DNA from: Penicillus capitatus
Taxonomy: Eukaryota; Plantae; Chlorophyta
Direction: 5' to 3'
Assembly (NCBI GenBank): GCA_965649825.1
Contig: OZ287698.1
Location: forward strand, 62,001 to 126,000
Length of the DNA stretch: 64,000 nucleotides
The notes below the pieces were generated by a model that was not told the origin of the DNA, searched no databases, and was given only the letters and a program-made list of their open reading frames with translations. Below, piece by piece: positions 3,121 to 64,000 of the stretch (position 1 is the stretch's first letter; each line of letters begins with the position of its first letter). A program made the position numbers and the translations under genes.

Positions 3121-4518
3121 ATGAACACGGTATGTTCTTTCGGTTTCGCTCCCCGATCACATGCGCTGTCGCTCGGCGCAAGGACAGCGAAACGTTTCTC
3201 CTTGAACGGCAGTAGTGGACGCAGCAGGTCGTCGTCCTTGGTCGTTTCGGCGAAGAAGAAGAAGAAAGAGAGCATGGAAGCTGTAGAGAATGTGCTAAGA
3301 CGGACAGAAGAGATCCAGAAGCAGATGACCATGCTCAAATCGGAACTGATCGAGACTCAGGAGGCTGAACAGAAAAGGATGAAGGAGAACAGCGAGGTGA
3401 TGAATGCCGTGGCCGTTTTGCATTCGCTTGACGGGGCATTGACGATGTTGCTGGATCGACAAGAACGGTTCTTCAAAGAAGAGAGAGACTACTGGTTGGC
3501 TGAGAGAGGAGAATGGCAAAAACGCGAGTCTGAACTCAGAAGAGAGATTGCCCAGCTGAACGCGAAACTCTCGAGTCAAGCCCAGTCGCATTCTACAAAG
3601 CCGACGTCTTCATCCGAAGAGAAGATGAACTCGGTGAATACAGCCAAGGAAGCGGTGGAGGCGGTAGGCGATGTAGCCGAGAAGGTGAAGGCTTCTATTG
3701 GGTTGGCATTCGCAGCTGTCAATGCTGGAGATGTGTTGTCTGAAGACTATGAGAAACTGCTCCGTCCACCCTCCAACGGAAAAACTCTCCATGCGAATAG
3801 TCCTTCGACCGACAAGGAGGCAGATATTCCCGTAGAGACGGTCAAGAGTCCTCCCACGGGACCCCCACCGACCTTGGCGGTCGGAGATGATGATATCTAC
3901 TGGGTCAGCCAGTTGCAAGCAGCTCTCGGGAAGAAGGGATATTACTGTGGAGATGATGATGCGGAGGATTTCTATTTCGGCGAAGGGACCGTTTCTGCAT
4001 TGCTCACGTTTCAAGCATGCACGGGGCTCAAAGAAACAGGCACGACAGATGCAGTGACGTGGAAGGCATTGTTAGGTGAAGATATGAAACCCGTCGTCGG
4101 AGATGTCCATCCAGACAACACAGCATCGACAACGACCGATCAGAAGAATACCACTCCAACGGGAAATGATGAGGAACCGAAGGAATTTCCAGTTTTATCT
4201 GAGTTTGACGGTGGTAAAGAAGTGCACTGCTTTCAAGTCATGCTCGAGGTTGCTGGTTTTTCATGCGGAAAGGACGACATGATGTGGTGGCATTACGGCG
4301 ATGATACCATTGCTGCTATCAAGACATTTCAGGCATGTAACGGATTGCCACAGAGCGGTGTGGCAGACGCGCTTACATGGGAGAAGCTTGCTGGTGAAGG
4401 AAAGACGATGGACGATGTCTGCCGAGTCGTCGAGAAGGAACAGATCTACGAAGAAGACCTGACTAAATCTGATCGCGTGTGGTTGATGGGAGAACAAAGA
4501 TGGGAACGCAAACTGTGA
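3121..4518 (+). CDS. pTAC5-like plastid protein: transit peptide, coiled coil and two peptidoglycan-binding-like (PG_binding_1) domains; intronless
   Basis: Two repeats of (YW)VxxLQxxL..GF.CG.DD.....YG..T..A...FQACxGLxxTG..D..TW; C-terminal RVWLMGEQRWE resembles the pTAC5 RVFLLGENRWE motif. Confidence 0.8.
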   Translation: MNTVCSFGFAPRSHALSLGARTAKRFSLNGSSGRSRSSSLVVSAKKKKKESMEAVENVLRRTEEIQKQMTMLKSELIETQEAEQKRMKENSEVMNAVAVLHSLDGALTMLLDRQERFFKEERDYWLAERGEWQKRESELRREIAQLNAKLSSQAQSHSTKPTSSSEEKMNSVNTAKEAVEAVGDVAEKVKASIGLAFAAVNAGDVLSEDYEKLLRPPSNGKTLHANSPSTDKEADIPVETVKSPPTGPPPTLAVGDDDIYWVSQLQAALGKKGYYCGDDDAEDFYFGEGTVSALLTFQACTGLKETGTTDAVTWKALLGEDMKPVVGDVHPDNTASTTTDQKNTTPTGNDEEPKEFPVLSEFDGGKEVHCFQVMLEVAGFSCGKDDMMWWHYGDDTIAAIKTFQACNGLPQSGVADALTWEKLAGEGKTMDDVCRVVEKEQIYEEDLTKSDRVWLMGEQRWERKL

Positions 4519-4904
4519 GGCTTCACTCTAGAGCTCCCAATGGGAAGAGAATCCGCATACTTAACGTGGCAATGCGAGAAAACTTATGGGGAGTATATGT
4601 ACGCACTCGTGTGTGTCTGTGTAATGATCAATTATATCGCGTCGAGGCCATGGTACAGAGAGCACGTTCGTTCACTGCGTTGGCCAAGAAGGCGACGCCA
4701 AAAGACGGCGATTTTCTGCAGGAGTGATCCTCGGCAGTTGTACGGTGGTGCATACACGGCAGAGGACTCTCGTTGCAAACTCACGGTTGTTGTCTGCGAG
4801 AAGTCGTCGCTTTCAAGTCTGTTTTCGCGATTTTGCGTCGCCCTGAAGCAGCTTGCAACAGGTTTTGCAGAGATCTCGCAGAAAACGACCGTCATCACTG
4901 ATCA

Positions 4905-6333
4905 ATGGCGTCCCACTTTTGCAGCATGTCCATCTCCGAGTTTCATCTCGTGGTGCACAAAGAGATGGTCTGATACCAGGCATTGCGGCGGATACCTGAG
5001 GATCGAGGGAATCGGCCAGGGATTGCTGCAAAGGGAAAGACTGTTGTGGTATGGTTCACGAATGATCTGCGACTGCACGACAACGAGATGCTCAAAACAG
5101 CACAGAACGCAGCAACGCATATTCTTCCATTGTTTGTCTTCGATCCGCGCTGTTTTCAAAAGGTCACTCAGAAGCGAACAGAAAACATCCTGCCAATGAA
5201 AGATCGATAGGGCCGATCGGGTTTTACGAGAATGGGACCCGTAAAGGCGAAGTTCCTGATAGAATGCGTGCAGAATCTGAAGCGAAATCTGGAAGAGATC
5301 GGATCCAAACTGTTCGTCAGATTGGGTCGGCCAGAAGAGATTCTACCATCCGTTGTCAGACAGATCGGCGCTTCGGATGTTTTCTGCCAAGATCAAACGG
5401 ATCATCAAGACATTCAGGTCAGGATCGTATATCTCCCTTCGATCTGTCACGAGCGTTCCTTTGCTCCTTGTGTGTTTTTAGACGCAGAAATCAGTGGCAG
5501 AGGTTCTAGAAGGCGTAGGTGCCCGTCTCCGCAGTGTTTGGGGATCGACGTTGCATCATGCAGATGATCTGCCATTCACTGTCAACGATCCGCCACTGCA
5601 CTTCGGTTCGATGCTTCGTTTCTAGATTACACAATGTCCTTGCAAATCGATATAGACTCTTTTCAAAAACAATTGGAATCTATCAAAGTAAGACGTCCTT
5701 CTGAGAGAATTGAGAAACTGGGAAAGCTGCCAACAACAACAAGGTGAACATGCTGTACGACTCTTTCTACCTGTGTTCAGTCTCCTGACTCCAGTCTGGA
5801 AGAACAACAGATCCCAGATTTGAAGCGTCTGGGCTTCTCGGACGTCCCACTGTCCAAAGCGTTCTCTGCCGATATGCTCGGTGGCGAATCTGAAGCACTG
5901 AAGCGACTGGGAAAGCTGTCATCGTCATCGGCGCATCAAGTTTCACTCTTGTCGATCTGGCTGGTAGATTCAAATTCGAAGATTACGGTGAAATGGCTAC
6001 ATTGTGTATCAATAGAAAGCGGGTTGTCTCTCACCTCGTCTGTTATATCACACATTTAATGGACAACATGACGAAGAATCCCCACCATTCCCACACATTA
6101 AAAAGAAAGGTGTTTATTGGATGTTTCTTTACGAACGAACGAACGAACGAACGAGATGAAAGGGTGTTGCTGTTGTTGTTTGTCCAGGTAAAAGGTGTGC
6201 ATTGTTATTGGAGCTACTGTGGCACGATTTTTATCGCTTTTCTATTCGAAAACAGGCATGGAGGAGGAAGAAGGCAATGGTGGTGGAGGCGTCCACTTCT
6301 TCTTTCAAGGGCTGTTGTCATGTCGTCTGTTAG
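4905..6333 (+). CDS. PHR2-like photolyase/cryptochrome-family protein (N-terminal photolyase domain, FAD-binding domain truncated)
   Basis: VVWFTNDLRLHDNE, LPLFVFDPR, AKFLIECVQNLKRNL, GGESEALKRL; splicing restores SIWL|KAGCLSPR and LELLWHDFYRF, then a stop at 6333. Start uncertain. Confidence 0.8.
6131..6154 (+). repeat. (ACGA)6 microsatellite inside the last intron of the PHR2-like gene
   Basis: Directly visible: acgaacgaacgaacgaacgaacga. Confidence 0.9.
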
Positions 6334-53178: not shown

Positions 53179-54633
53179 ATGATTCCTGGGGCACAGGCCG
53201 AGACATTCTACAAACGAAAATTGCCATGTCCCCCGGCAACCGAATTCTCTTCACAACACGGTGGGCCCGGTGATGTCGGTCAGAGATACTCGATAGGTAG
53301 TGGTTCATCCATGATGCAGGGATTGCCTTGTTTCAAGAGGCTTTTAGTGACGGGACAATGTTGGGTTTCTTTAAACTGGTGGAGCAGTATCGAACACAAA
53401 CAGAACCTGCGTTTTGTGGTCTGACAAGCGTGGCGATGGTTCTGAATGCACTGTCTATTGATCCTCGACGCACATGGAAGGCGCCATGGAGATGGTTTGA
53501 TGAGACGCTCCTCGACTGCTGCAAACCGCTCTCCCTCGTCCAGAAAAATGGACTCGATCTTGTTCAGGTGTACGCCTCTCTGATGGATATGGCCTGAGAG
53601 TGTGGTCGTGGAGGCGGCGTGTTTGGCACGATGCAATGGAGCGGAAGTGAGGATGCAGTATTCTGGCTCTTTCGAAATGAATGAATTTCGTGAGCTCGTT
53701 AGAGAATGCTGTACAACGGGGGAGCAGCATCTGATCGCCCATTACTCCCGCAAGACGTTGAGTCAAACAGGCGATGGTCATTTCAGTCCTGTCGGAGGTT
53801 ATCACGCCGGACAAGACATGGTCCTCATTCTCGACACCGTACGTCACATCACACCGATCGATAGAGATAAGACACGGCGGTGGTGGATTGCAGGCGCGGT
53901 TCAAGTATCCCCCTCACTGGGTGCCACTAGAGCTGTTGTTCAAGGCCATGGATGAGGTCGATGTCGTTTCTGGGCGAAAACGGGGCTATATACTGATGAA
54001 GGCTCCGGAGAGACCCATCTCGCTGTGCTATACGCTGAGTCGTAGTCAGGAGAGTTGGACAAAGGCAGAGCAGTACATTCGTTCGGATGCTCCCAAGCTG
54101 TTCAATGAAATGGCATCGAGGGGGGCGTCTCTCGAAGCCATCGTACGAGAACTGGTCATGCAATGTCCCATACAAAGTGTTCAGAAATTTGTGGCCGTCC
54201 GCGTCAGTAGCTGTGACTGTGCGACAGATGATACCCCTCAGACAGCCCATCTGAATTCCGCTCGCGTCGTTGAGGAACTGCAGAGCCTACCTCTCTATCA
54301 AGTCCCATCCACGTCACATCACTGCCCACCTCTGTTGTCATGCGAGATTTTTAGGAAGTTGAGAAGAACCTGGAAAGCACAGCGACGGCATCGTCGGATG
54401 AAGGTCAGGCAGGTCAAGTGACAGCCCTGTTGTTGCTGAGGACACCAGATCAGTGGGTGGAGGCGAATGTATACCCAGAGATCCGACAACAGCTCGATGC
54501 GTGGATGGATCTTTCGAGGAATCCCCTTATCAAAACAGAGATTGCCTTTCTAAAGCATCAGATGGACATCCTCGTGGCGGCTGGAGAACTCCAAGCACCC
54601 GATCACAACACATATCGATCCATAGGCATGTGA
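53179..54633 (+). CDS. PCS: Phytochelatin synthase
   Basis: FYKRKLP, RTQTEPAFCGL (catalytic Cys), WKAPWRWFDE, CLARCNG, QTGDGHFSPVGGYH (His), LILDT|ARFKYPPHWVP (Asp). Confidence 0.96.
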
Positions 54634-54849
54634 TCTCCTCGACTTGACAAGTGTCTCAAGATCCTACTGGATTTTCCCTTACATTCTTTCGTCCTCTTCT
54701 ATATCTTAATTAAGCGTATGGGTGCGTCTGGTGAGGTGTCAGCTTTTAGGAAAAGGTCTTCCTTTCTGCGTCTGTCAAATTCATGTGTCCACCACAATCA
54801 CATCATCGCAGTTCCTAGAGTCACTAACCTATTACGGCATCTGTTTAAA

Positions 54850-55553
54850 CAGACGATCAGTTCTTGGACAAGGGATCGGAATTCTGTAGAGACCTTGACC
54901 ATCATCCACTGACCACAGGCGGCATTGTCGTACAGATATGCCAATCCACCATCGCGCACATGCGTCGTTTAATGTCGCCATCGCATGGCGGATGTCGTAC
55001 AACACAGGATGCCAATTCGACAGGCAGGTGCCAGCGAACCGAGACGCGAGCACAGGTCAAAGCACTCATTTTGGCACGACGCTTAACGAGGCGCCGCCGT
55101 CGTAGAATTCTCTTTGCCTCGAGAGGGACGCAGCGCAGCAGTCCAATTCCTATTCTCTTCCGAGCGTCCAGCGACGAAGGGTTGGATTCGGATACCATGG
55201 AGTGGTCAGACCTGGCCTTCTCTGAGGAAGACAGAACGGTGAACACCCTCACCAGCGCCGAACGACCACAGCCGTCCGTCCTCGCCGACCGCGAACGCAG
55301 ACGCAACTGTATCTATTGTCCGAGGGCGTGTGCTGTCTCATGCACGTGACGATGTAGATCCGCGCAGTATCCGTGCGAACCGAGACGACTCATCTGCTCT
55401 ACACGAACGCATTCGTAACAGTAACGCATCGAATTTGCAGAGCTCTGAGAATGATGGCTCGGCTGTTGGCTGGTCTGACAGATGTGGAACATCGAGTTGC
55501 TGATCGAGACGAGCCACTGCCCCTCCATGGCCACATCTTTGACTGTGAGGCAT
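54850..55553 (-). CDS. Possible hypothetical gene, unassigned
   Basis: Minus-strand exon-like pieces including SAFAVGEDGRLWSFG, which resembles a beta-propeller strand; no consistent splice model found. Confidence 0.25.
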
Positions 55554-55798
55554 CGAGATTTATCGAGCGATGGATATGCCAACGCCAAACGTGTGCAGAT
55601 ATTCGTACGAGCCAACGGACACATGGACTGGATACAAATCCTTCACATGTGCTTTCGAGGGAAAGTGAGAATCGATCGATCGAGAGTGAGAACAAGAGAA
55701 AAGTGTGACATTGCATCTAGGATCGATCGATGCCGAGCCGGATCTCTTCCCGTGTCCAGACATGTGGGAGATCGAGACGTTTCTGTCGAGGGGATCGA

Positions 55799-56821
55799 AT
55801 GCCGTTCGAGCAGAAAGAAGAGACGCCTCTGCGCAACAACAGCGATCCGCAGGGGGCGATGTTCGACCCAGAGGTAAGCACAGGCTGCTGTTCAATTTCT
55901 ATAAAGCAGTTGTGCAACCGAGGGCTGATAGGACGTCAGAGAAGAAGGAGCTTTGATGAGGATATGAGCCTCAACGCTATGCGTCATCATCTGCGACGAT
56001 GCTTTGAGAGATCGGCCAGTTCTCGAGAAACGAACGGAGGACAGTCGTCGACAGATGGACATTCGGATCCGGTACGACTGCCCACGCTGCTTGCTCTCAG
56101 TAAAGAATAATGGGCAATGACTGAAGGGTGGTGGCAATCCTGTACCAGCTTACACAAGTCTCTTATCTCCTGGAATGGAGTTCAAAGGATTTCAGCGATC
56201 TCCAAAACCGACGGGACATGACAGCAATGCCGGTTCTGTGGACGATTGGGTTGTGCGTGCTCAGATTCGGGTATCTGTTGCCATGGGATCGTGCGACCAC
56301 GTATGCCTGCTGTCTAGAGGTATGATATTGAGAGTGGTTATATCTGTGGAACCATGGCTGCCTACGTTAAGAACGACGACCCCGTTGAGACGTTCTGGGA
56401 AGGAGAGATTATCGATAACAGAAATCATCATTTCATCACCGACAAATGGGATGCAGACATGCGTACAGACATCCGCTATTGGTCCAAGTTCCCTGCGTTT
56501 GAAGATCTCAAATGTTCTGTTCGATCGAGACCTCCATTGAAAGAGTACCCATTCATTTTTATGAGATGGAAGGAAACATACTTCATGACAAAGACAGAAC
56601 AGAGTACCCTGACCATTCAAGGATTCTATTACATTTGCATGTGCCGCCAAACGGGTGCGACAGAGATCGGTGAATTCTGGCTACTGTTGAGGATGGATGG
56701 TGTAGGTGAAGTCCTCGGCTTCTACTTTGACCCTGAGTGTCAACCTTTCCAAGAATTGGAATTGTTGCCAGACAAACGTGGTCGATCTGGCTTCTCCTTC
56801 TCCCATGCACAATTCGTATAG
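55799..56821 (+). CDS. GID4: GID4/VID24 substrate receptor of the GID/CTLH E3 ligase
   Basis: GMEFKGFQ, VETFWEGEIID..HHFITDKWDA, WSKFP, YPFIFMRWKE, LTIQGFYYIC, GFYFDPECQPFQELEL. Confidence 0.94.
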
Positions 56822-56930
56822 CACGAGACGACGACAGATGGCGAATCGTGCACTCGAAGACGGAATAACAGACTTCTCTGAATGTTGTAGTGTTGGACTA
56901 CTCTCCTGCCATTTCATTTCCGTCCACGGT

Positions 56931-57638
56931 TTACATTTCCCCGCATTCAGTGATAAGACAAGGCAGTTTGGGTTTGTTGTTTGGACCGCATGGAACATTC
57001 TCAATTTTACGTACCACTAATAAACCGTCTCCCAAGACCCGACCAAAGACCGTGTGCTTGTTGTCTAACCATGGACACTTGGCACATGTGATGAAAAACT
57101 AGAGATGACATTCTGCAGGATGGGAGAGAATAGACGGGATACGTACTTGACATCCATTGCTGTTGGGTCCACTGTTCGCCATCGAAAGCAGACCAGATCC
57201 AGTGTGCTTACAGCGAAAGGTCTCATCAGAAAATTTGGTGCCGTAAATGCTCAGGCATCCCGTTCCATCTCCCTAGAGGCATTATTTCGGACACATACAT
57301 CATAGGGGATGGATTTTGTTCACGTGGACAAAGTCGCCCGATTGGATCATGAAATCTTTGATCACTCTGTGAAAGGAGCATCCCTTGTAACCCAATGGAA
57401 TGTTGTTCTTTCTGAATTCTCCTGTGCAGAACTGCCGAAAATTCTCGACGGTTTTGGGACAGATATCGGCCCAGAGCTCCATACGCATGCGGCCAGCAGG
57501 GATATCGCCAATGCTGACGTCTACGCCATCGTGTCCATACCGATGCGCATGGCACCTTGTGTGACTCCTACCGAAGAAGACGACGGGATTGTCGGGATTC
57601 GGTGCGCGCACGTGCCACTGCACTTCTTCGTGCGTCAT
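56931..57638 (-). CDS. PPIH: Cyclophilin H (U4/U6 snRNP PPIase)
   Basis: NPDNPVVFF|[43 protein letters not shown]|..[18 protein letters not shown]-terminal ECGEM. Confidence 0.93.
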
Positions 57639-57684
57639 ATTACACGACAGACTGGACCAACAACGAAATGACGAATAAGACAGG

Positions 57685-58869
57685 TCACGTTCGACTCGCC
57701 GTACGGTAGACAAGGGGCTCCCCTTGACAGTAATGACGGGCAAATGTCTGCCCTAACGATGTCGGTTGGTAGAAGGCTAACTGATCCTTCGTAATGCAGT
57801 AGCCAAAAATGAAACACCGCCTGTATGCAGGTCGAGGACAGTGAAATCGAGCATCTCTTATTGAGTGAATGTACCGGGCCACATCGAGCAACGTCGAGGC
57901 AATACCTTGACGACGACATCTCTGTGCAACCCAGAGAAGAACCACGCCGCCATGAGCAACGCTCTCCTCAATCGCCTCCTCTCCCACTGACTGATCCATC
58001 TATCTATGTGTCCACCAAAGCATCTGGCAGAGTGGTATTTGGGAGCGTACCAAGGGAGCGGCGGTGTCGATCTTTTCTATGAGGAGACATCCAACGATAG
58101 TACTCTTCTTTACGAACACGTAGATCTGCAGTCCCCGTCGTGTCATTGTATGTTAACAGCAGTGTGGGTCTGGGTACTTTCTGATGCTCTTTGAACAGAT
58201 CCGTCAGTGAACATCCAAAATCGCGTTCCATCACAGCACAGAGATCTGCAACCTATCAACCATTCGTTCTTCTGTTCGAGATCCAGGATCGTTATCGGCC
58301 ATACCGTTCGATTCCGTGATGGATGTATAACAGCTGAGCCCAGTTGCATCACTCTTTCTCCTTGCTCTCTCTTCAGAAGCTGAATGTCGCGTTTACCCGC
58401 CTGACAACGAACGGGCACAGTTCAAAGGCATTCCGCCAGTTTATATGGGGACAAGACTTTGAATGGGACGGATTGAGTGATATAGGTATGATGAAATTTG
58501 CGATGCAGCTGTTCATCTTTCTCGCAACCAGGAGTAAATCGCATTCCGCATTCATGGCAGATTCGGGAACAGAATTCCCTCTGCAAGCCACATCGATCAG
58601 AAGGACACAGGACAGCGTTGTGCTGTTTACTTGGCCAAAGTCCAGGTAGAGCTGAACAAAACCACGTTTCTTCTTGTTGTTCTTCTTCGATGGATCATTC
58701 TCGATCGCATCGTCCTTGTCGCAGCAGACCCGATCGCGTTTCGATTCTGGAAGGCTGTAAGAACAAAACGTCGCGTCAGAGGGGGAAAGAGGAGAGATGT
58801 CTTTTTTGGATCAGAATAGAGTCAGGTGTACCGTTTCCGTGTTGCTCTGTATTTTCTTTCCTGCGACAT
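57685..58869 (-). CDS. ECO1: ECO1/CTF7 (ESCO) cohesin acetyltransferase
   Basis: PIP-like QLYLDFGQ|, C2H2 finger [55 protein letters not shown]. Confidence 0.9.
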
Positions 58870-59554
58870 CTCGGGATCGTTGTTGGATTGCTTGGTGAAT
58901 AGCTTTGCCGCGACGTGAAGGTGCTGCGTCGCGGGGGACGTCACATCAATGAGGCATACCGTAGTAAAGCTTCGCAACAAATCCGCACGCGTCGATTAGA
59001 AACTGAGGATACGACACCAACGAAATGAAATCCCGATCAACGACTTAGACATGCGCTATGTCATGGAGGAGCCTTAAGATTGCCGACGGTTCTCATAATC
59101 CTGGCGCTTAGCTCTCATCTATTCGTCTAAAGAATACATCTCTAGCAATACTGTCCGTCGTCTGTCCTTCAAAAATACTCTCAGCTGCAAAGACGGATGC
59201 AGAGGGAACAAGTCAGGGGATGATTGGTAGGCGACAACCGTCGAAGACTAACGGCGACAAACAGATGATACAATGCTTTCGCTTTGTGGGTGTCCTCGGA
59301 GCATTGAAAGTGAATCGTCACGATTGTATGCTTAAGTACATTGACCTCGTGACGAACACCTATTCTTGTCATTTCGTTCACGCGCGAATTATCTCTTCAG
59401 GAAGACACTGACAACGACTCGACTCTCGAGGTACGTCGCACCGACGACGACTCGATACGCAGTCGGAAAACGCACATGTAGGTGGTGACGTTGACGTTGT
59501 AGGTGTAGACAGTTTTTCGTTTTGGACCTGTTGACACAAGTTGAAAGTCACAAG

Positions 59555-60613
59555 ATGTCAAGAAAGGACACAGTACTGCTCTTCTTGTTTGTGTTGACCT
59601 CTTCAAGCACAGTTTTCGGAGACCGACTGCTTGATATTTCATTGCTGACTTGGGGTGAATTGCAAACTCAAGCTGGGTACTTTACCAAAAGTGGTCGATG
59701 GAAAGGGGGTCTGCCTAAGAAAGTGCGTAAGGAGGCGGAACTGTTTGGTTCTTGCGAAGAAAGACAAGTCAATGGCACGTTCTGCCAATCGTGGACGTCT
59801 GAGGAAGAGCGCAAGGACAGCTATGGTAAAGGAAACTGCAAGTGTAGCAAGAACACGGGCGCATACTGCCAAGAATGGACGTGCCTTAGAGAACACACCA
59901 AGAGAACGTGCGAAAAGCGATACAAGAAGCGCTGCATTGCCACGCCGAAGGAAATGCATGTCCAGAGCTGTATCTGTCTCGAAGCCGCTGACAGTGGAGC
60001 ATACTGCGTGAAGTGGAAGTGCAGTGAAGAGAGAAGACGTCGCCGGTATAAGGACGGCGTGTTCACCTGCCGTGCGTCTGATGCATCTATGGAGTTCTGT
60101 CATCTCTGGAACGGCGATTTTGAATCGGATAAGGAAGTTGAGTCTATCGCCTGTGAATGCACTGATAGTGGCGATGGGTACTGTGACTACTGGCAGTGTC
60201 AGGCGAGGACACTACTTCGCTGCTCCAAGCACAAAGGAGGCTGGTGTCGTTTGGGAGTCTCTTTGGGTGTGTTCGGTTCACTCGGATTGCTTTTCCTGTC
60301 TGGGGGTATGGCGATTATTTTCGATGACGTTTTAAAGGGGAAGACAGCAGCGTGGAATCGCGGAAAGATACTGGCCATCTACGTCTGCTTTCTGGTGCTT
60401 CCGTGGGGAATTGGAGTAGCAATAGCGGGCGGCATTGACGGAATCGCATGGGTGACGCTTATGTGGAGCATCCCATTTCTGATACTGGCATTTGTATTGT
60501 TTCAATCAAAGCGGGGTAAGGCTGCGGAACCATCATCGATGTTGGCCCCTTTGCAAGAGCCGCCTCAGATTCCTGCTTATCTGTTTGATGGGAAGACATA
60601 TGCAGCATCTTGA
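59555..60613 (+). CDS. Intronless membrane protein A: signal peptide, Cys/Trp-repeat ectodomain, 3 TM helices; family unknown
   Basis: Single open frame; hydrophobic N-terminus, 20 Cys in a repeated CxC..Cx2WxC pattern, three hydrophobic segments; clear paralog at 62566. Confidence 0.85.
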   Translation: MSRKDTVLLFLFVLTSSSTVFGDRLLDISLLTWGELQTQAGYFTKSGRWKGGLPKKVRKEAELFGSCEERQVNGTFCQSWTSEEERKDSYGKGNCKCSKNTGAYCQEWTCLREHTKRTCEKRYKKRCIATPKEMHVQSCICLEAADSGAYCVKWKCSEERRRRRYKDGVFTCRASDASMEFCHLWNGDFESDKEVESIACECTDSGDGYCDYWQCQARTLLRCSKHKGGWCRLGVSLGVFGSLGLLFLSGGMAIIFDDVLKGKTAAWNRGKILAIYVCFLVLPWGIGVAIAGGIDGIAWVTLMWSIPFLILAFVLFQSKRGKAAEPSSMLAPLQEPPQIPAYLFDGKTYAAS

Positions 60614-60735
60614 GGACTTGATTTTTCGCGTCTTAGCCTAGTCGACCTATCTATTCTTTACAACTTTTAACGCGGACTCGGTCACCACTTTTTGCGTTGT
60701 TGAATTTCGAGAAGCCTTCAAGTACAACGATCAGT

Positions 60736-61900
60736 CTACTCGAGACTTTCCCTATGCAAAATTCGGATAAAGAAGGGGCCGGCGAATGCACCCTGTATTG
60801 TCACATTCAACTGCGTCGCTGACTGACAGAGTGCTGTGACTAACCGACTCTTAGATTCATAAAGAACAACAAGAGTCGAGTGCTTGATAAATCCGATATC
60901 CGCGTGAAATAACATTTTATTGTATCCGCGATGTAGATTGGAGAACAGTTTCTTACACACGTAGTATCGAAGTTTGTAAGTAAAAAGGAAGTCAGCAATA
61001 GATTTATTTCTTAGCTTTCAAGCGCGTTCTTTGGCTATTCAATCTGGACTGGATGTGTGGGAACAATGACCGCCTTTGATACGAAGGAAGATACATAAAG
61101 AATCCTCTGAGCAAGAAGATAAAATATGTTCTTTCGGAGCATTCATTATCTCTCCTTTGGCAAAGAGATGTTCGGATCACCTTTCTGCTTGAGGAATTTA
61201 GCGGACCAAGCTCTCATTAATAACTCTATAAACCAGACCATAAACGATTCTTGATAATCCAAATGAAACACATGTGCCAGTGCGGTAATCACATTCTATG
61301 TCGGAGATCCTCACGTCGCGTTCGAACCGAAAAGGTAACAGACCTTCGTCTTTGAACGGTGTCAGAAGTTGTCCAAAAATTACAACAAACCATCCATCCA
61401 TTAACCAAGAACGCGTCATACATGTATCAAAGACAGATCAACCTTTTCCACGCATCATTGAAGTAACAAAGATTGACACGGGAAATTATGATTTGAACAA
61501 AATAGAGAACCTGAGTGAATCGTTTGCCGACAAAGAAGAGAGGGTCGCCCGTCAGAAGCACTCACACAACATATACGAAGATGGAAACAAACATCCGTGC
61601 CTCTGCCAGGAAAGAGGGAGTGTTGTGGCTGCTGTGGGCGATACAGAAAACAACACCAATCGCCGTTGCTTTACTTGGACTCTCCAGAGTCAGGCTATGG
61701 TAACGCCTCCGAAGAAATTAAACATAGCTGTGCAGTCGATGCTGCTCAGCACTCTCGCATCGTGGCCATTATGAGAAGTGGAAAACTCACCTGGGAGACA
61801 AGCACTGAATGGAGGAGGTTACTTGGTTCGGATTGATGGATTCATTTCTGGTTGTCATCCACATTGCTTCCGGATAACACTGGCCATAGCCTTTTCAGCT
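60736..61900 (-). CDS. Possible multi-exon membrane-protein gene or pseudogene between the two paralogs
   Basis: Hydrophobic exons ATAIGVVFCIAHSSHNTPSFLAEARMFVSIFVYV and VLYFVQIIISRVNLCYFNDAWKR are joined by an in-frame 57-nt GT-AG intron; the ends are unresolved. Confidence 0.35.
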
Positions 61901-62565
61901 GAAGCTCGATAAGCGTGCTACAGACATGCGTGGCTTTCAATATGTTAATGGCTACAGAAGACCAGCATCACTCGTGAGTGGCATCCGAACACTAAGAACT
62001 CGTCCTAGTGTGGAAAACAGACATTAGTAGACGTGTCGATCCAGTACACAGATAACGAGCGCCTAGCCCACGTCATATGCGTCCATGACAAAACAGCTCA
62101 AGACGAATGAACTCGGACGTCGGCAATCTTTTCAAATCGAGTTCATGAGATGAAATTGAAAATCTCCGTGCTGACGTGCGCGATTCAAGATAAGTTCGTA
62201 TGCCGTGGAGTGAAGCGCACCAGACATAACACTTACATGATATTACGAGTCTCGGATAATCACACTTTTTTATGTGTGAAGTGTGAAGTTCTCACTCGAG
62301 TCTGACAAAGCATAACAAAAGACACAATATGCATGCATATATATGTGCACATTCCGAACGTATTGTTGTGTCGACAACGATAAAGAGCCTCTTACGCCAA
62401 CGTTTGAATAACATAGCGGTTCTTGAGTTGACGGTGCTCTTCTGGTGAAGAATGTTCCTTTTCCTGATGCATGATTCTCTCGGTGTTCTTACGGAACCTT
62501 CACTAAACGAAGCTCGACTGCGCGGTAAAGAGCCGCCAACGCACGTCAGCTTCGTGACAACTGTC

Positions 62566-63603
62566 ATGGCCTCTATACTCTTCGCAATGATACACGTCCA
62601 AGCGAGAGAAGTCACTGGAAGCAGCTGGAGTGAGCTGGAAAAGAGAGGAGGGTATTACACGGAAGAAGGCACATGGCGCGGGGGATTTCCATGGATGGCT
62701 CACAGAGCCGAGAAAACTTTGGAAGTCTGTTCCGATAGGCGTCGTTCAGCCAATGGCACTTTTTGCCAATCATGGGAGATTGAGAGAGGTCGCGAATGGG
62801 CATCCAAAATTGGGTTCTGTCACTGCTCACGTCACATCGACGCATACTGTGACAGCTGGCGCTGTTCCTTTTCTTCTGAAAACAGCAATGGGTTCTGTCA
62901 GTCATTGCGAACACATCACTGCCTTCAGTTGTTGAACGAAGAAAAGGTCAAAAGCTGTGACTGTATGGAAGCTGCAGAGAATGGGATGCACTGTCAGCGT
63001 TGGAGATGTCTCACGAATGACGCTTCTGGTGGCAACCCAGAGGAAGGACAATATCACTGCCTCAGTTCAAACTCTTTAAATACGTCCTGTCAGAAATGGG
63101 TGGGAGAATGGAACTCAGAGAAGGAAGTGCAATCGGATGTCTGTGAATGCGAGCAGGAAGGAGATGGTCATTGCCACGCATACTGGTGCAAGACAAAATC
63201 GATGATCCGATGCTCTGAGCAATGGGGAGGATGGTGCCACTTGGAGATTTCTATCGGCCTTTACGGGACACTCGGATGTTTCTTTTTGCTCATAGGGATG
63301 ATGATGCATTGGACACATTGTGCTAATCGTCACGCCAATGTCACACGCGCAATTGTGGTGTGTTCATTGATCGTCATTCTTGTTATACTTTTGTTCGCTG
63401 TGGCCCTTACTGGGGGTGAGTATGGTCTGAGCTGGGTAGCTTTGATGTGGTTTGTATGTTTTCTTGTCTTGGTGTCGGTCAGAATGCTTTTGAAAGCGCA
63501 GCGGGTCAGGAGTTCATCTCTTATGCAGGATCCGAATGCACTACTGCCGCCTGACGAATACGGAATCCATCCCTACCTCTTCAACGGCAGGTTTTACCCT
63601 TAA
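62566..63603 (+). CDS. Intronless membrane protein B, paralog of 59555-60613
   Basis: Same architecture; all 20 ectodomain Cys align with protein A; shared NGTFCQSW, EKEV.S..CEC, RCS..GGWC, WV.LMW and YLFxG.xY. Confidence 0.85.
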   Translation: MASILFAMIHVQAREVTGSSWSELEKRGGYYTEEGTWRGGFPWMAHRAEKTLEVCSDRRRSANGTFCQSWEIERGREWASKIGFCHCSRHIDAYCDSWRCSFSSENSNGFCQSLRTHHCLQLLNEEKVKSCDCMEAAENGMHCQRWRCLTNDASGGNPEEGQYHCLSSNSLNTSCQKWVGEWNSEKEVQSDVCECEQEGDGHCHAYWCKTKSMIRCSEQWGGWCHLEISIGLYGTLGCFFLLIGMMMHWTHCANRHANVTRAIVVCSLIVILVILLFAVALTGGEYGLSWVALMWFVCFLVLVSVRMLLKAQRVRSSSLMQDPNALLPPDEYGIHPYLFNGRFYP

Positions 63604-64000
63604 TTCGAGGCAACCCATCAGATTTCTGTTTTGCTGTTTTTGTCGCCCTATATAAGTATGTCGAGTAGCGCAGGAGCACGTGAGCGTATGGCCCTGATTT
63701 TTGCGGATGAAAACGGAGGGGACCGTAACATTCAATAAGCGTATCATCTCTGTTTTGCTGTTGTCAGCTGTTTCTTTTTTGCGCGGAAAGACAGTACAGT
63801 GAGAATCAATGAAAAAAATCGTACGAACGGGAAGTGGAGCGGAAAGTCTGACGTGTGAATTGGCATTGCTTAGATGTCTTGTTATATTTAAATTGAAAAG
63901 TCAGACGTACGTATTCTCCTCTAAACAAAACGATCACGCCCGTTGCGCACACCGTTATCTGCAGATTCGCCCTGACTGTACCGTGATTTCTTCCCCGTTC

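Follow-up and report, generated by a model that had tools for sequence, protein, structure and literature searches.

Gene structure and family membership

What do two long, uninterrupted reading frames near the end of a 64,000-nucleotide stretch of Penicillus capitatus DNA encode, and do they belong to any known family? The stretch, called the window here, covers positions 62,001 to 126,000 of the forward strand of contig OZ287698.1 (assembly GCA_965649825.1), and both frames, copy 1 (59555..60613) and copy 2 (62452..63603), lie on its plus strand. An earlier note made from the letters alone had described them as a pair of intronless paralogs for a cysteine-rich surface protein that it could not place. 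We conclude that they very probably represent a real, selected and undescribed family, with a signal-type N-terminus, an ectodomain of three six-cysteine repeats and three hydrophobic helices. For the explanation as a whole, in which both open reading frames (ORFs) are functional single-exon genes of this family and the protein serves in extracellular binding or recognition, the chances seem to us about even.

Both copies are intact long ORFs of one exon each in the ORF list. Copy 1 is complete (352 aa plus stop, protein P0001) and aligns over its full length with relatives; its residue positions and cysteine numbers are used throughout. Its predicted signal peptide (aa 1-22, 59555..59620; MSRKD, TVLLFLFVLT, SSSTVFG) was read off the sequence: its n-region is positively charged, its core is hydrophobic, and the residues at -3/-1 are small. 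Behind it lies an N-terminal cap with the motif W.EL....GY.T..G.W.GG.P (aa 30-57, 59642..59725), for which the family consensus is LK..AGYYT..G.Y.GG.P. Across 45 relatives the cap glycines G51 and G52 are conserved at 80% and G41 at 76%. Copy 2 is also complete, with an uncertain start: the candidates are 62452 (383 aa), 62467 (378 aa, P0003) and 62566 (345 aa), the last of which lines up with the signal peptides of the paralogs.

The two proteins share 116 of 353 aligned residues (33%) in BLASTP, and at E = 3e-69 this similarity is not due to chance. Invariant between them are the 20 cysteines of the ectodomain (C67 to C231), the cap motif, the WV.LMW of the last helix and the C-terminal YLF.G..Y, and hydropathy shows in each an N-terminal signal-like segment and then three hydrophobic segments. 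The ORF list, BLASTP, the alignment and hydropathy thus confirm the earlier description of two intronless paralogs with a signal peptide, 20 aligned cysteines, the W.EL, WV.LMW and YLF motifs and three transmembrane (TM) segments. Their paralogy stands, but they are not an isolated pair: they form half of a four-gene array in a genome with at least 11 members. To call that genome intron-rich was an overstatement: several neighbouring genes do consist of more than one exon, but single ORFs of 639, 578, 568, 465 and 438 aa are present in the window too.

As a working definition, members of the family have a signal-type N-terminus, an AGYYT..G.Y.GG.P cap, three CxC-x(4-12)-C-x2-[WYFG]-x-C units, a Cys loop leading into a Gly-rich helix, and a WGG turn. 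Copies 1 and 2 carry all of these, and the three CxC units are present in nearly all full-length relatives. When both copies were compared with Pfam-A by hmmscan at E <= 10, nothing came near threshold and no EGF, TNFR, LDLa, GCC2_GCC3, TSP_1, granulin or furin-like domain appeared. The family region had no Pfam-A match at E <= 1e-3 in 99 sequences, one of which carries an unrelated SHOCT match. Literature searches for the family found nothing. The family is undescribed, with no detectable link to Pfam, PDB or BFVD families. The earlier note had also regarded it as unrecognised, and this holds: there is no Pfam-A match in those sequences, no credible PDB match and no Foldseek neighbour, and the check for a confident match to a characterised family has been run and found none.

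The sole PDB profile match below E 0.01 was to helices of the GABA-B receptor, a class C G protein-coupled receptor (E 0.0057). With a domain score of 14 bits, an independent E-value of 0.14 and an accuracy of 0.49, it was set aside as similarity of hydrophobic segments. In this match, profile positions 216-326 (the Cys loop and the three helices) align to a Cys-containing loop and the last three helices of GABA-B. The family, however, has three helices and not the seven of 7tm_3, it lacks a Pfam match to that domain and any common motif, and the human orthologs stand at E of about 1.

Repeat architecture and predicted structure

The AlphaFold2 model made from the two copies only has a predicted local distance difference test (pLDDT) of 38, against 89.1 with 45 homologs (predicted template modelling score, pTM, 0.79). 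In the latter the cap reaches pLDDT of about 98, and the ectodomain 94-98 nearly throughout and 86-88 in two ten-residue blocks. The cap is modelled as two short helices and a small bridge, and the ectodomain (58-221) as eleven strands arranged as hairpins, ten of them 9-15 residues long; helices follow at 233-261 and 266-322. The earlier picture of a beta-rich, disulfide-rich ectodomain with three membrane segments is borne out by this prediction together with hydropathy.

When slices of the alignment are compared by hhalign, R1 (aa 58-112, 59726..59890; Cys 67, 77, 95, 97, 105 and 110) matches R3 (aa 161-221, 60035..60217; Cys 172, 182, 200, 202, 210 and 215) with a probability of 98.3% and E 1.2e-14 over 52 columns. 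R1 is seen as long beta hairpins in the model, which likewise supports R3. The intervening R2 (aa 113-160, 59891..60034; Cys 119, 127, 139, 141, 151 and 156) has a diverged first half and matches R1 and R3 with a probability of 95-96% in its CxC...YC..W.C half only. The ectodomain as modelled is made of three tandem beta-hairpin repeats of about 50 residues and six cysteines, plus a juxtamembrane Cys pair. In each repeat the six cysteines follow the plan C...C..W, then CxC...YC..W.C, and the model builds it from a pair of long beta hairpins. Five units had been read earlier from the same protein; the Cys/Trp pattern was rightly seen, but hhalign resolves it into three six-Cys repeats and the juxtamembrane pair. 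By alignment with copy 1, the repeats of copy 2 are placed at 62701-62877 (R1), 62878-63024 (R2) and 63025-63207 (R3), also on the plus strand.

The repeats of copy 1 are followed by the juxtamembrane C223-C231 loop and the glycine-rich helix TM1 (aa 222-261, 60218..60337), defined by hydropathy and the model helix 233-261. TM2, the WGG turn and TM3, which includes WV.LMW, occupy aa 266-322 (60350..60520), with hydrophobic segments at 272-290 and 297-315. The C-terminal tail (aa 323-352, 60521..60610) carries YLFDGKTY, has pLDDT 57-68 and would be cytosolic. In copy 2 the Cys loop and three hydrophobic helices (63208..63510) were placed by hydropathy and alignment, and its tail (63511..63600) carries YLFNGRFY. 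Across relatives the membrane glycines are well conserved (G241 87%, G244 82%, G292 91%, G293 89%). The WGG turn joins helices 2 and 3, and the AlphaFold2 model from the shallow alignment is broken there, at 292-293.

Some cysteine pairs can be proposed from their joint loss. C119 and C127 are jointly absent from 7 relatives and for this reason probably form one disulfide, and the co-loss of C223 and C231 in 4 relatives supports a putative disulfide between these two. Two co-losses seen in single sequences, 95/105 and 200/215, are incompatible with one another if the repeats are homologous, so that the pairing within the CxC...C....C units is not derivable from them. Clusters of Lys and Arg come directly behind hydrophobic segments 1 and 3, which fits an N-out, C-in orientation by the positive-inside pattern. 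Cys-pair co-loss and charge distribution are indirect pointers to an ectodomain that would be disulfide-bonded and outside the cell, and the signal-like N-terminus and the 20 conserved cysteines agree with such a surface orientation.

The pLDDT 89 model was compared by Foldseek with 350,542 PDB chains and with BFVD. No PDB match reached E <= 1e-3, no known Cys-rich repeat fold was among the top 50, and BFVD gave three matches only, with a template modelling score (TM-score) of at most 0.26. Matches to barrels, pentameric channels and viral proteins were rejected as non-specific (TM-score at most 0.35). The top Foldseek matches are up-and-down barrels and meanders (lipocalins, streptavidin, PloI4, bacterial outer-membrane barrels), which resemble the model in their long antiparallel neighbouring strands. 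They differ from it, however, in that they are not disulfide-laddered and have no helical membrane segments; the matches have TM-scores of 0.1-0.35, a root-mean-square deviation (rmsd) of 13-27 A and no sequence similarity. Pentameric ligand-gated channels provide the sole full-length, architecture-level likeness from Foldseek, with a beta-rich N-terminal ectodomain (about 200 residues, roughly ten strands) that passes directly into a helical membrane bundle. The family has three helices instead of their four, no Cys-loop signature and no Neur_chan match in Pfam, and ten disulfides would take the place of the hydrophobic core of the beta sandwich. Closest in general design are TSR, EGF, TNFR cysteine-rich domain, GCC2/GCC3 and granulin repeats, which are also tandem six-Cys extracellular modules of about 50-60 residues with long beta hairpins and Trp beside the disulfides, and which serve as rigid binding scaffolds. 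TSR-type repeats lack the spacing C-x9-C-x2-W ... CxC-x7-C-x2-W-x-C of the family, they occur in secreted or single-pass proteins and not on a three-helix anchor, and none was in the Foldseek PDB results. Against every library searched, the sequence family and the predicted fold are new, and the class of molecule, a disulfide-rich repeat ectodomain on a membrane anchor, is familiar.

Tandem array, synteny and selection

When the contig, which is 1.02 Mb long in an ENA metagenome assembly, is read beyond the window end and scanned with a hidden Markov model (HMM) of the family, copies 1 and 2 prove to be the first half of a four-gene tandem array, with all genes on the same strand. Behind copy 2 lies a spacer (63604..64000, plus strand). 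The ATG of copy 3 (window-equivalent 64011-65291, L002 11545-12825, plus strand; 426 aa) is 11 nt past the window end, and copy 4 (window-equivalent about 67103-68476, L002 14637-16010, plus strand) has about 416-457 aa. A second cluster in the same sample (L005 4257-15326) holds four to five members, namely three intact, one partial and one fragment, with one of them on the opposite strand. The family HMM scan found one further dispersed member, and the member-bearing contigs have matching coverage of 31-42x. P0097 and P0109 are the counterparts in this genome of P0007 and P0023. In all, the window genome holds at least 11 family members, and all those found are single ORFs.

A contig of a sister species, from a second assembly, has the same four genes in the same order, and these are 1:1 orthologs of all four copies. 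As each copy has its own ortholog there, the duplication is old, as had been supposed. In a third, more distant relative (a short-read contig), the upstream neighbours Vac_ImportDeg and Acetyltransf_13 are present too, with two family genes in tandem behind them, and the locus is therefore old as well. Between the window and the sister species, nucleotide identity is 84% in the flanking upstream block and 70-73% in the array including its spacers; the stretches compared are window 54000-59082 and 59078-63985. The array region may have a locally raised rate of mutation or gene conversion.

Selection was estimated from the ratio of nonsynonymous to synonymous divergence (dN/dS, Nei-Gojobori) between the copies of the window genome and their sister-species orthologs. 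For whole genes dN/dS is 0.18-0.40, with dS of 0.56-0.82 and up to 0.89 in single regions; copy 1 has 0.18-0.21 and copy 2 has 0.39. Four neighbouring genes have dS of 0.32-0.51 and dN/dS of 0.09-0.41. By these values the family evolves somewhat faster than its neighbours, but is clearly constrained by purifying selection. Taken by region, the estimate is lowest in the ectodomain (0.24-0.32), higher in the membrane part (0.37-0.49) and highest in the tail (0.54-0.67), which makes the ectodomain the most constrained region between orthologs by this measure. The variable surface proposed by the earlier note is therefore found between paralogs but not between orthologs. In the sister species, copy 1 carries a 1-nt deletion that splits the ORF (L001 about 10409, equivalent to window 59922-59930). 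Since dN/dS is about 0.2 in both halves, this frameshift is either recent or an assembly error.

The tail had been considered a conserved sorting or signalling element. The YLF.G..Y motif is, however, private to copies 1 and 2 and their orthologs and for this reason a subfamily feature: copies 3 and 4 share another tail, ..I[HR].R[DN]..TG[EK][LR]L.., and many relatives end a few residues after helix 3. An acidic dileucine, DTGELL, was considered as a sorting signal in copies 3 and 4 and rejected; it is present in the sister species and is not kept in copies 3 and 4 of the window genome.

Further pieces of DNA in and beside the array were noted. Between copies 1 and 2, a 158-aa ORF (window 61298-61774, plus strand) is called a gene in the source annotation. 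Its protein identity to the syntenic counterpart is 37-43%, not above the surrounding non-coding DNA (69% at the nucleotide level), so that this ORF is unlikely to be a gene. In the interval separating copies 3 and 4 there is a short family-like fragment (L002 13875-14054, 38 bits), with a weak equivalent in the sister species (L001 16528-16815), and this is probably the remnant of a decayed fifth copy. Downstream of the array (L002 18919-21137) lies a very large gene of over 1156 aa with NACHT and HEAT/Adaptin/PDS5-type repeats, an NLR-like architecture adjoining the array.

Relatives and a giant-virus branch

Word-indexed protein searches with a single protein, a 6-sequence profile or a 45-sequence profile returned almost only the window proteins, and the family became visible only by an exhaustive HMMER search over 1.84 billion representatives. 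This gave 96 cluster representatives at E <= 1e-3, of which 46 pass E <= 1e-10 and 23 pass E <= 1e-30, the best homologs in other organisms reaching E 1e-77. Most matches are aligned from the N-terminal cap to the third helix, membrane part included. Few of the 30 representatives that were looked up have a name; those that do come from the brown algae Discosporangium mesarthrocarpum, Ectocarpus fasciculatus and Undaria pinnatifida and, at a greater distance, from the choanoflagellate Salpingoeca kvevrii (a transcript). With only one intron in the gene of Ectocarpus, a low number of introns is a family trait. The distant, choanoflagellate-type clade keeps the same plan, with a GFPYYNGG.P cap, EFE...C.C...YC..W.C units and hydrophobic C-terminal segments, and has an extra N-terminal Cys-rich piece.

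An approximate neighbour-joining (NJ) tree has three main groups, namely window-genome members with environmental sequences, a brown-algal clade and a choanoflagellate-type clade, and a small fourth one (P0043/P0044). In this tree the array copies form a monophyletic set of four deep inside the algal clade, each paired with its sister-species ortholog. Judged from these matches, the family is patchily distributed over algae, a choanoflagellate, environmental protists and one giant-virus lineage. An AT-rich, highly fragmented assembly (NCBI GCA_013573075.1, GC 0.38) holds a distant member of 496 aa (L007 2036-3526) with a second fragment beside it (4454-4915), and the family may thus reach further lineages.

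The giant-virus branch consists of P0019 and its cluster mate P0099, found on two contigs of two ENA assemblies, ERZ6863740 and ERZ6864290 (L008 1-7059 and L010 4804-10978). Gene order is the same on both: the major capsid gene of a nucleocytoplasmic large DNA virus (NCLDV), EsV_1_7_cys, an ankyrin gene and a full-length family gene, with Bro-N and HNH nearby. Long ORFs cover 81-82% of these contigs, compared with fractions of 0.46-0.61 in the algal loci, and their GC content is 0.51-0.52. Among PDB entries, the capsid protein is matched by those of chlorovirus capsids (E 1e-45 to 1e-52). Capsid, gene order and coding density together indicate that at least one phycodnavirus-like giant virus or provirus encodes a full-length member. 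A viral connection had been suspected earlier, and it exists to this extent, but the viral member groups with the brown-algal clade and not with the window clade, and it is not sister to the array. Scans of IMG/VR with several query sets found no viral relative.

The EsV-1-7 cysteine-rich repeat family (PF19114) resembles the present one in its Cys-rich repeats and in its occurrence both in brown algae and in their giant viruses, and on each of the two viral contigs the EsV_1_7_cys gene is two positions away from the family gene. It is a separate Pfam model with no match to this family, and its members are not known to have membrane segments and show another Cys/His pattern. The EsV-1-7 family is common to brown algae and phaeoviruses, a point on which a literature search returned nothing.

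If the model and the distribution hold, this would be a well-defined "dark" family with a confident structure prediction and no solved structural neighbour. Its carriers would then include brown algae, a second lineage of algae, choanoflagellates and a giant virus. Algal and protist cell biology would gain an experimentally tractable surface protein, with homologs in Ectocarpus and Undaria, and virology a membrane protein that is a candidate for derivation from the host or for mimicry of it. The practical yield would be a Pfam-style family definition and a structural-genomics target, and the lineage-specific tandem expansions may mark a function in recognition or adhesion. The interest lies in the neighbourless confident model, the patchy distribution across supergroups and the giant-virus copy; it is a good lead rather than a discovery.

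Proposed function and alternative explanations

A role in extracellular binding or recognition is the function that we tentatively favour, although we would not give it quite an even chance. The protein would enter the secretory pathway, and its ectodomain of about 200 residues would be oxidised to a rigid, disulfide-stapled beta meander shown at the cell surface or facing a lumen. The three-helix anchor would hold this ectodomain, and its conserved small residues suggest tight packing with itself or with a partner. The ectodomain could then act as the binding or recognition module, with paralogs keeping the Cys/Trp scaffold and differing in exposed residues, and so perhaps in specificity. The subfamily-specific tails probably serve sorting only. 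Any output must pass via the membrane part or a partner protein, since the family as a whole has no cytosolic domain in common.

Several points weigh against this explanation. The AlphaFold2 model from 45 homologs shows TM2-TM3 as a single unbroken helix of 57 residues (266-322), so that the three-pass topology and the cytosolic tail rest on hydropathy, charge distribution and the GG turn; the WGG turn, two hydrophobic maxima and the charge pattern argue for a TM2-TM3 hairpin. The model does not appear to establish the geometry of the sheet or barrel, nor the disulfide map. The strongly conserved Gly and Trp positions of the membrane part suggest that it is more than an anchor. For every member, moreover, function has been read from architecture alone.

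A more far-reaching version of the binding or recognition role can be considered, which we regard as unlikely. Here the triple-repeat, disulfide-laddered beta meander on a three-helix glycine-zipper anchor would be a new fold, and the family would be an ancient surface family of flagellate protists exchanged with phycodnavirus-like giant viruses. Its place of action would be the contact between cells or between virus and cell, where it could be a factor for attachment or fusion, or else the host counterpart of such a factor.

The conserved membrane part also raises the possibility that the protein is a subunit or regulator of an oligomeric membrane channel or transporter, with the ectodomain serving for gating or ligand binding on a helical bundle, as in pentameric ligand-gated channels, P2X or ASIC. 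The ectodomain passes into TM1 without a linker, some of the best conserved non-Cys positions are in the membrane part (G241, G244, V288, G292, G293, W304), the tails are dispensable, and Foldseek lists many pentameric-channel chains over about 340 columns. Those matches, however, have E >= 1e-2, a TM-score of about 0.2 and an rmsd of about 20 A, which makes this a likeness of architecture only. The helices contain no conserved polar or charged residue, no channel domain is matched in Pfam, and the comparison of orthologs shows weaker constraint on the membrane part than on the ectodomain. A channel function is thus improbable in our opinion.

Alternatively, the protein could be a structural link between the plasma membrane and the cell covering (wall, scales or extracellular matrix), a rigid spacer and not a specific receptor. 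A rigid, disulfide-stapled ectodomain built from repeats would suit such a role. So would the lack of a conserved cytosolic signalling part, the multigene family with its tandem arrays and the presence in walled or matrix-bearing lineages (brown algae, the alga of the window). The ectodomain is, however, short for this, with only about 200 residues, and Pfam reveals no obvious carbohydrate-binding domains. Sequence alone does not separate a link of this kind from binding or recognition, and we rate it as a rather unlikely alternative.

The earlier note had also thought of gamete recognition. In a wider form, the family would provide a recognition or fusion factor of gametes or zoospores, or a host surface molecule that a giant virus has copied or uses for entry. 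Phaeoviruses infect wall-less spores and gametes, which would suit such a scheme, and all named carrier lineages have flagellate cells. Two independent contigs with the same gene order place a family member near an NCLDV major capsid gene, and this member groups with brown-algal ones; both observations are also in line with it. The constraint on the ectodomain, on the other hand, whose dN/dS is the lowest of the three regions, is the opposite of the rapid evolution typical of gamete-recognition proteins, and gamete recognition finds no support in these data. One genome has at least 11 paralogs, and no relative appears in IMG/VR or, as a fold, in BFVD. We consider a gamete or virus-entry factor quite improbable.

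Retroposition or a horizontal or viral origin of the locus was suggested as well, and the two genes would then be recently acquired foreign DNA, whether a retrocopy, a horizontal transfer or an integrated giant virus. Both are indeed single-exon genes, a viral clade of the family exists, and the array is more diverged between the two species than the upstream block. Nevertheless, the four-gene array is collinear in the sister species and its flanks are common to the third, so that synteny extends over at least three species. The GC content at third codon positions of the family genes (0.52-0.54) is within the range of the neighbours (0.49-0.58), and the tested ORFs of the window have cellular Pfam domains (PPR, ClpR, helicase, 5-phosphatase, phytochelatin synthase) or none. 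In the tree, the array is not sister to the viral sequence, and the low intron number is shared with Ectocarpus. An NCLDV provirus at this locus is not indicated, given cellular tested neighbours, low ORF coverage and an array at the same site in the sister species. Nor do the genes resemble retrocopies, all members found being single ORFs and the copies head-to-tail in tandem; no search for a poly(A) remnant was made. Recent foreign acquisition at the array locus is largely refuted and very improbable; an ancient transfer from virus to host or host to virus at the base of a clade may have occurred.

That the ORFs are chance frames or decaying pseudogenes, as the 1-nt deletion in the sister-species copy 1 and the fragment between copies 3 and 4 might suggest, is refuted by conservation: ORFs of 345-457 aa are intact in two species with dN/dS well below 1, a low value that the frameshifted ortholog still shows on either side of the shift, none of the 20 cysteines has been lost, and strong homologs exist elsewhere.

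Other genes of the window

Among the tested genes of the window, Pfam identifies PPR, ClpR, helicase, phytochelatin synthase, DUF789 and a plant-type inositol 5-phosphatase propeller. A single ORF of 465 aa (window 3121-4518, plus strand) has two PG_binding_1 (peptidoglycan-binding-like) domains and no recognisable catalytic domain. The ClpR gene is of plastid type, and its best PDB match is entry 7eko. In the sister-species sample, Tab2-like and chlorophyllase genes lie on a contig with coverage similar to that of the sister-species locus. Together with the plastid-type ClpR and the PPR, DUF789, phytochelatin synthase and 5-phosphatase genes, they point to a photosynthetic eukaryote; Rfam and tRNA scans gave no taxonomic clue. 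Candidate presequences have no hydrophobic signal peptide, upstream exons being possible, and this hints at a primary plastid.

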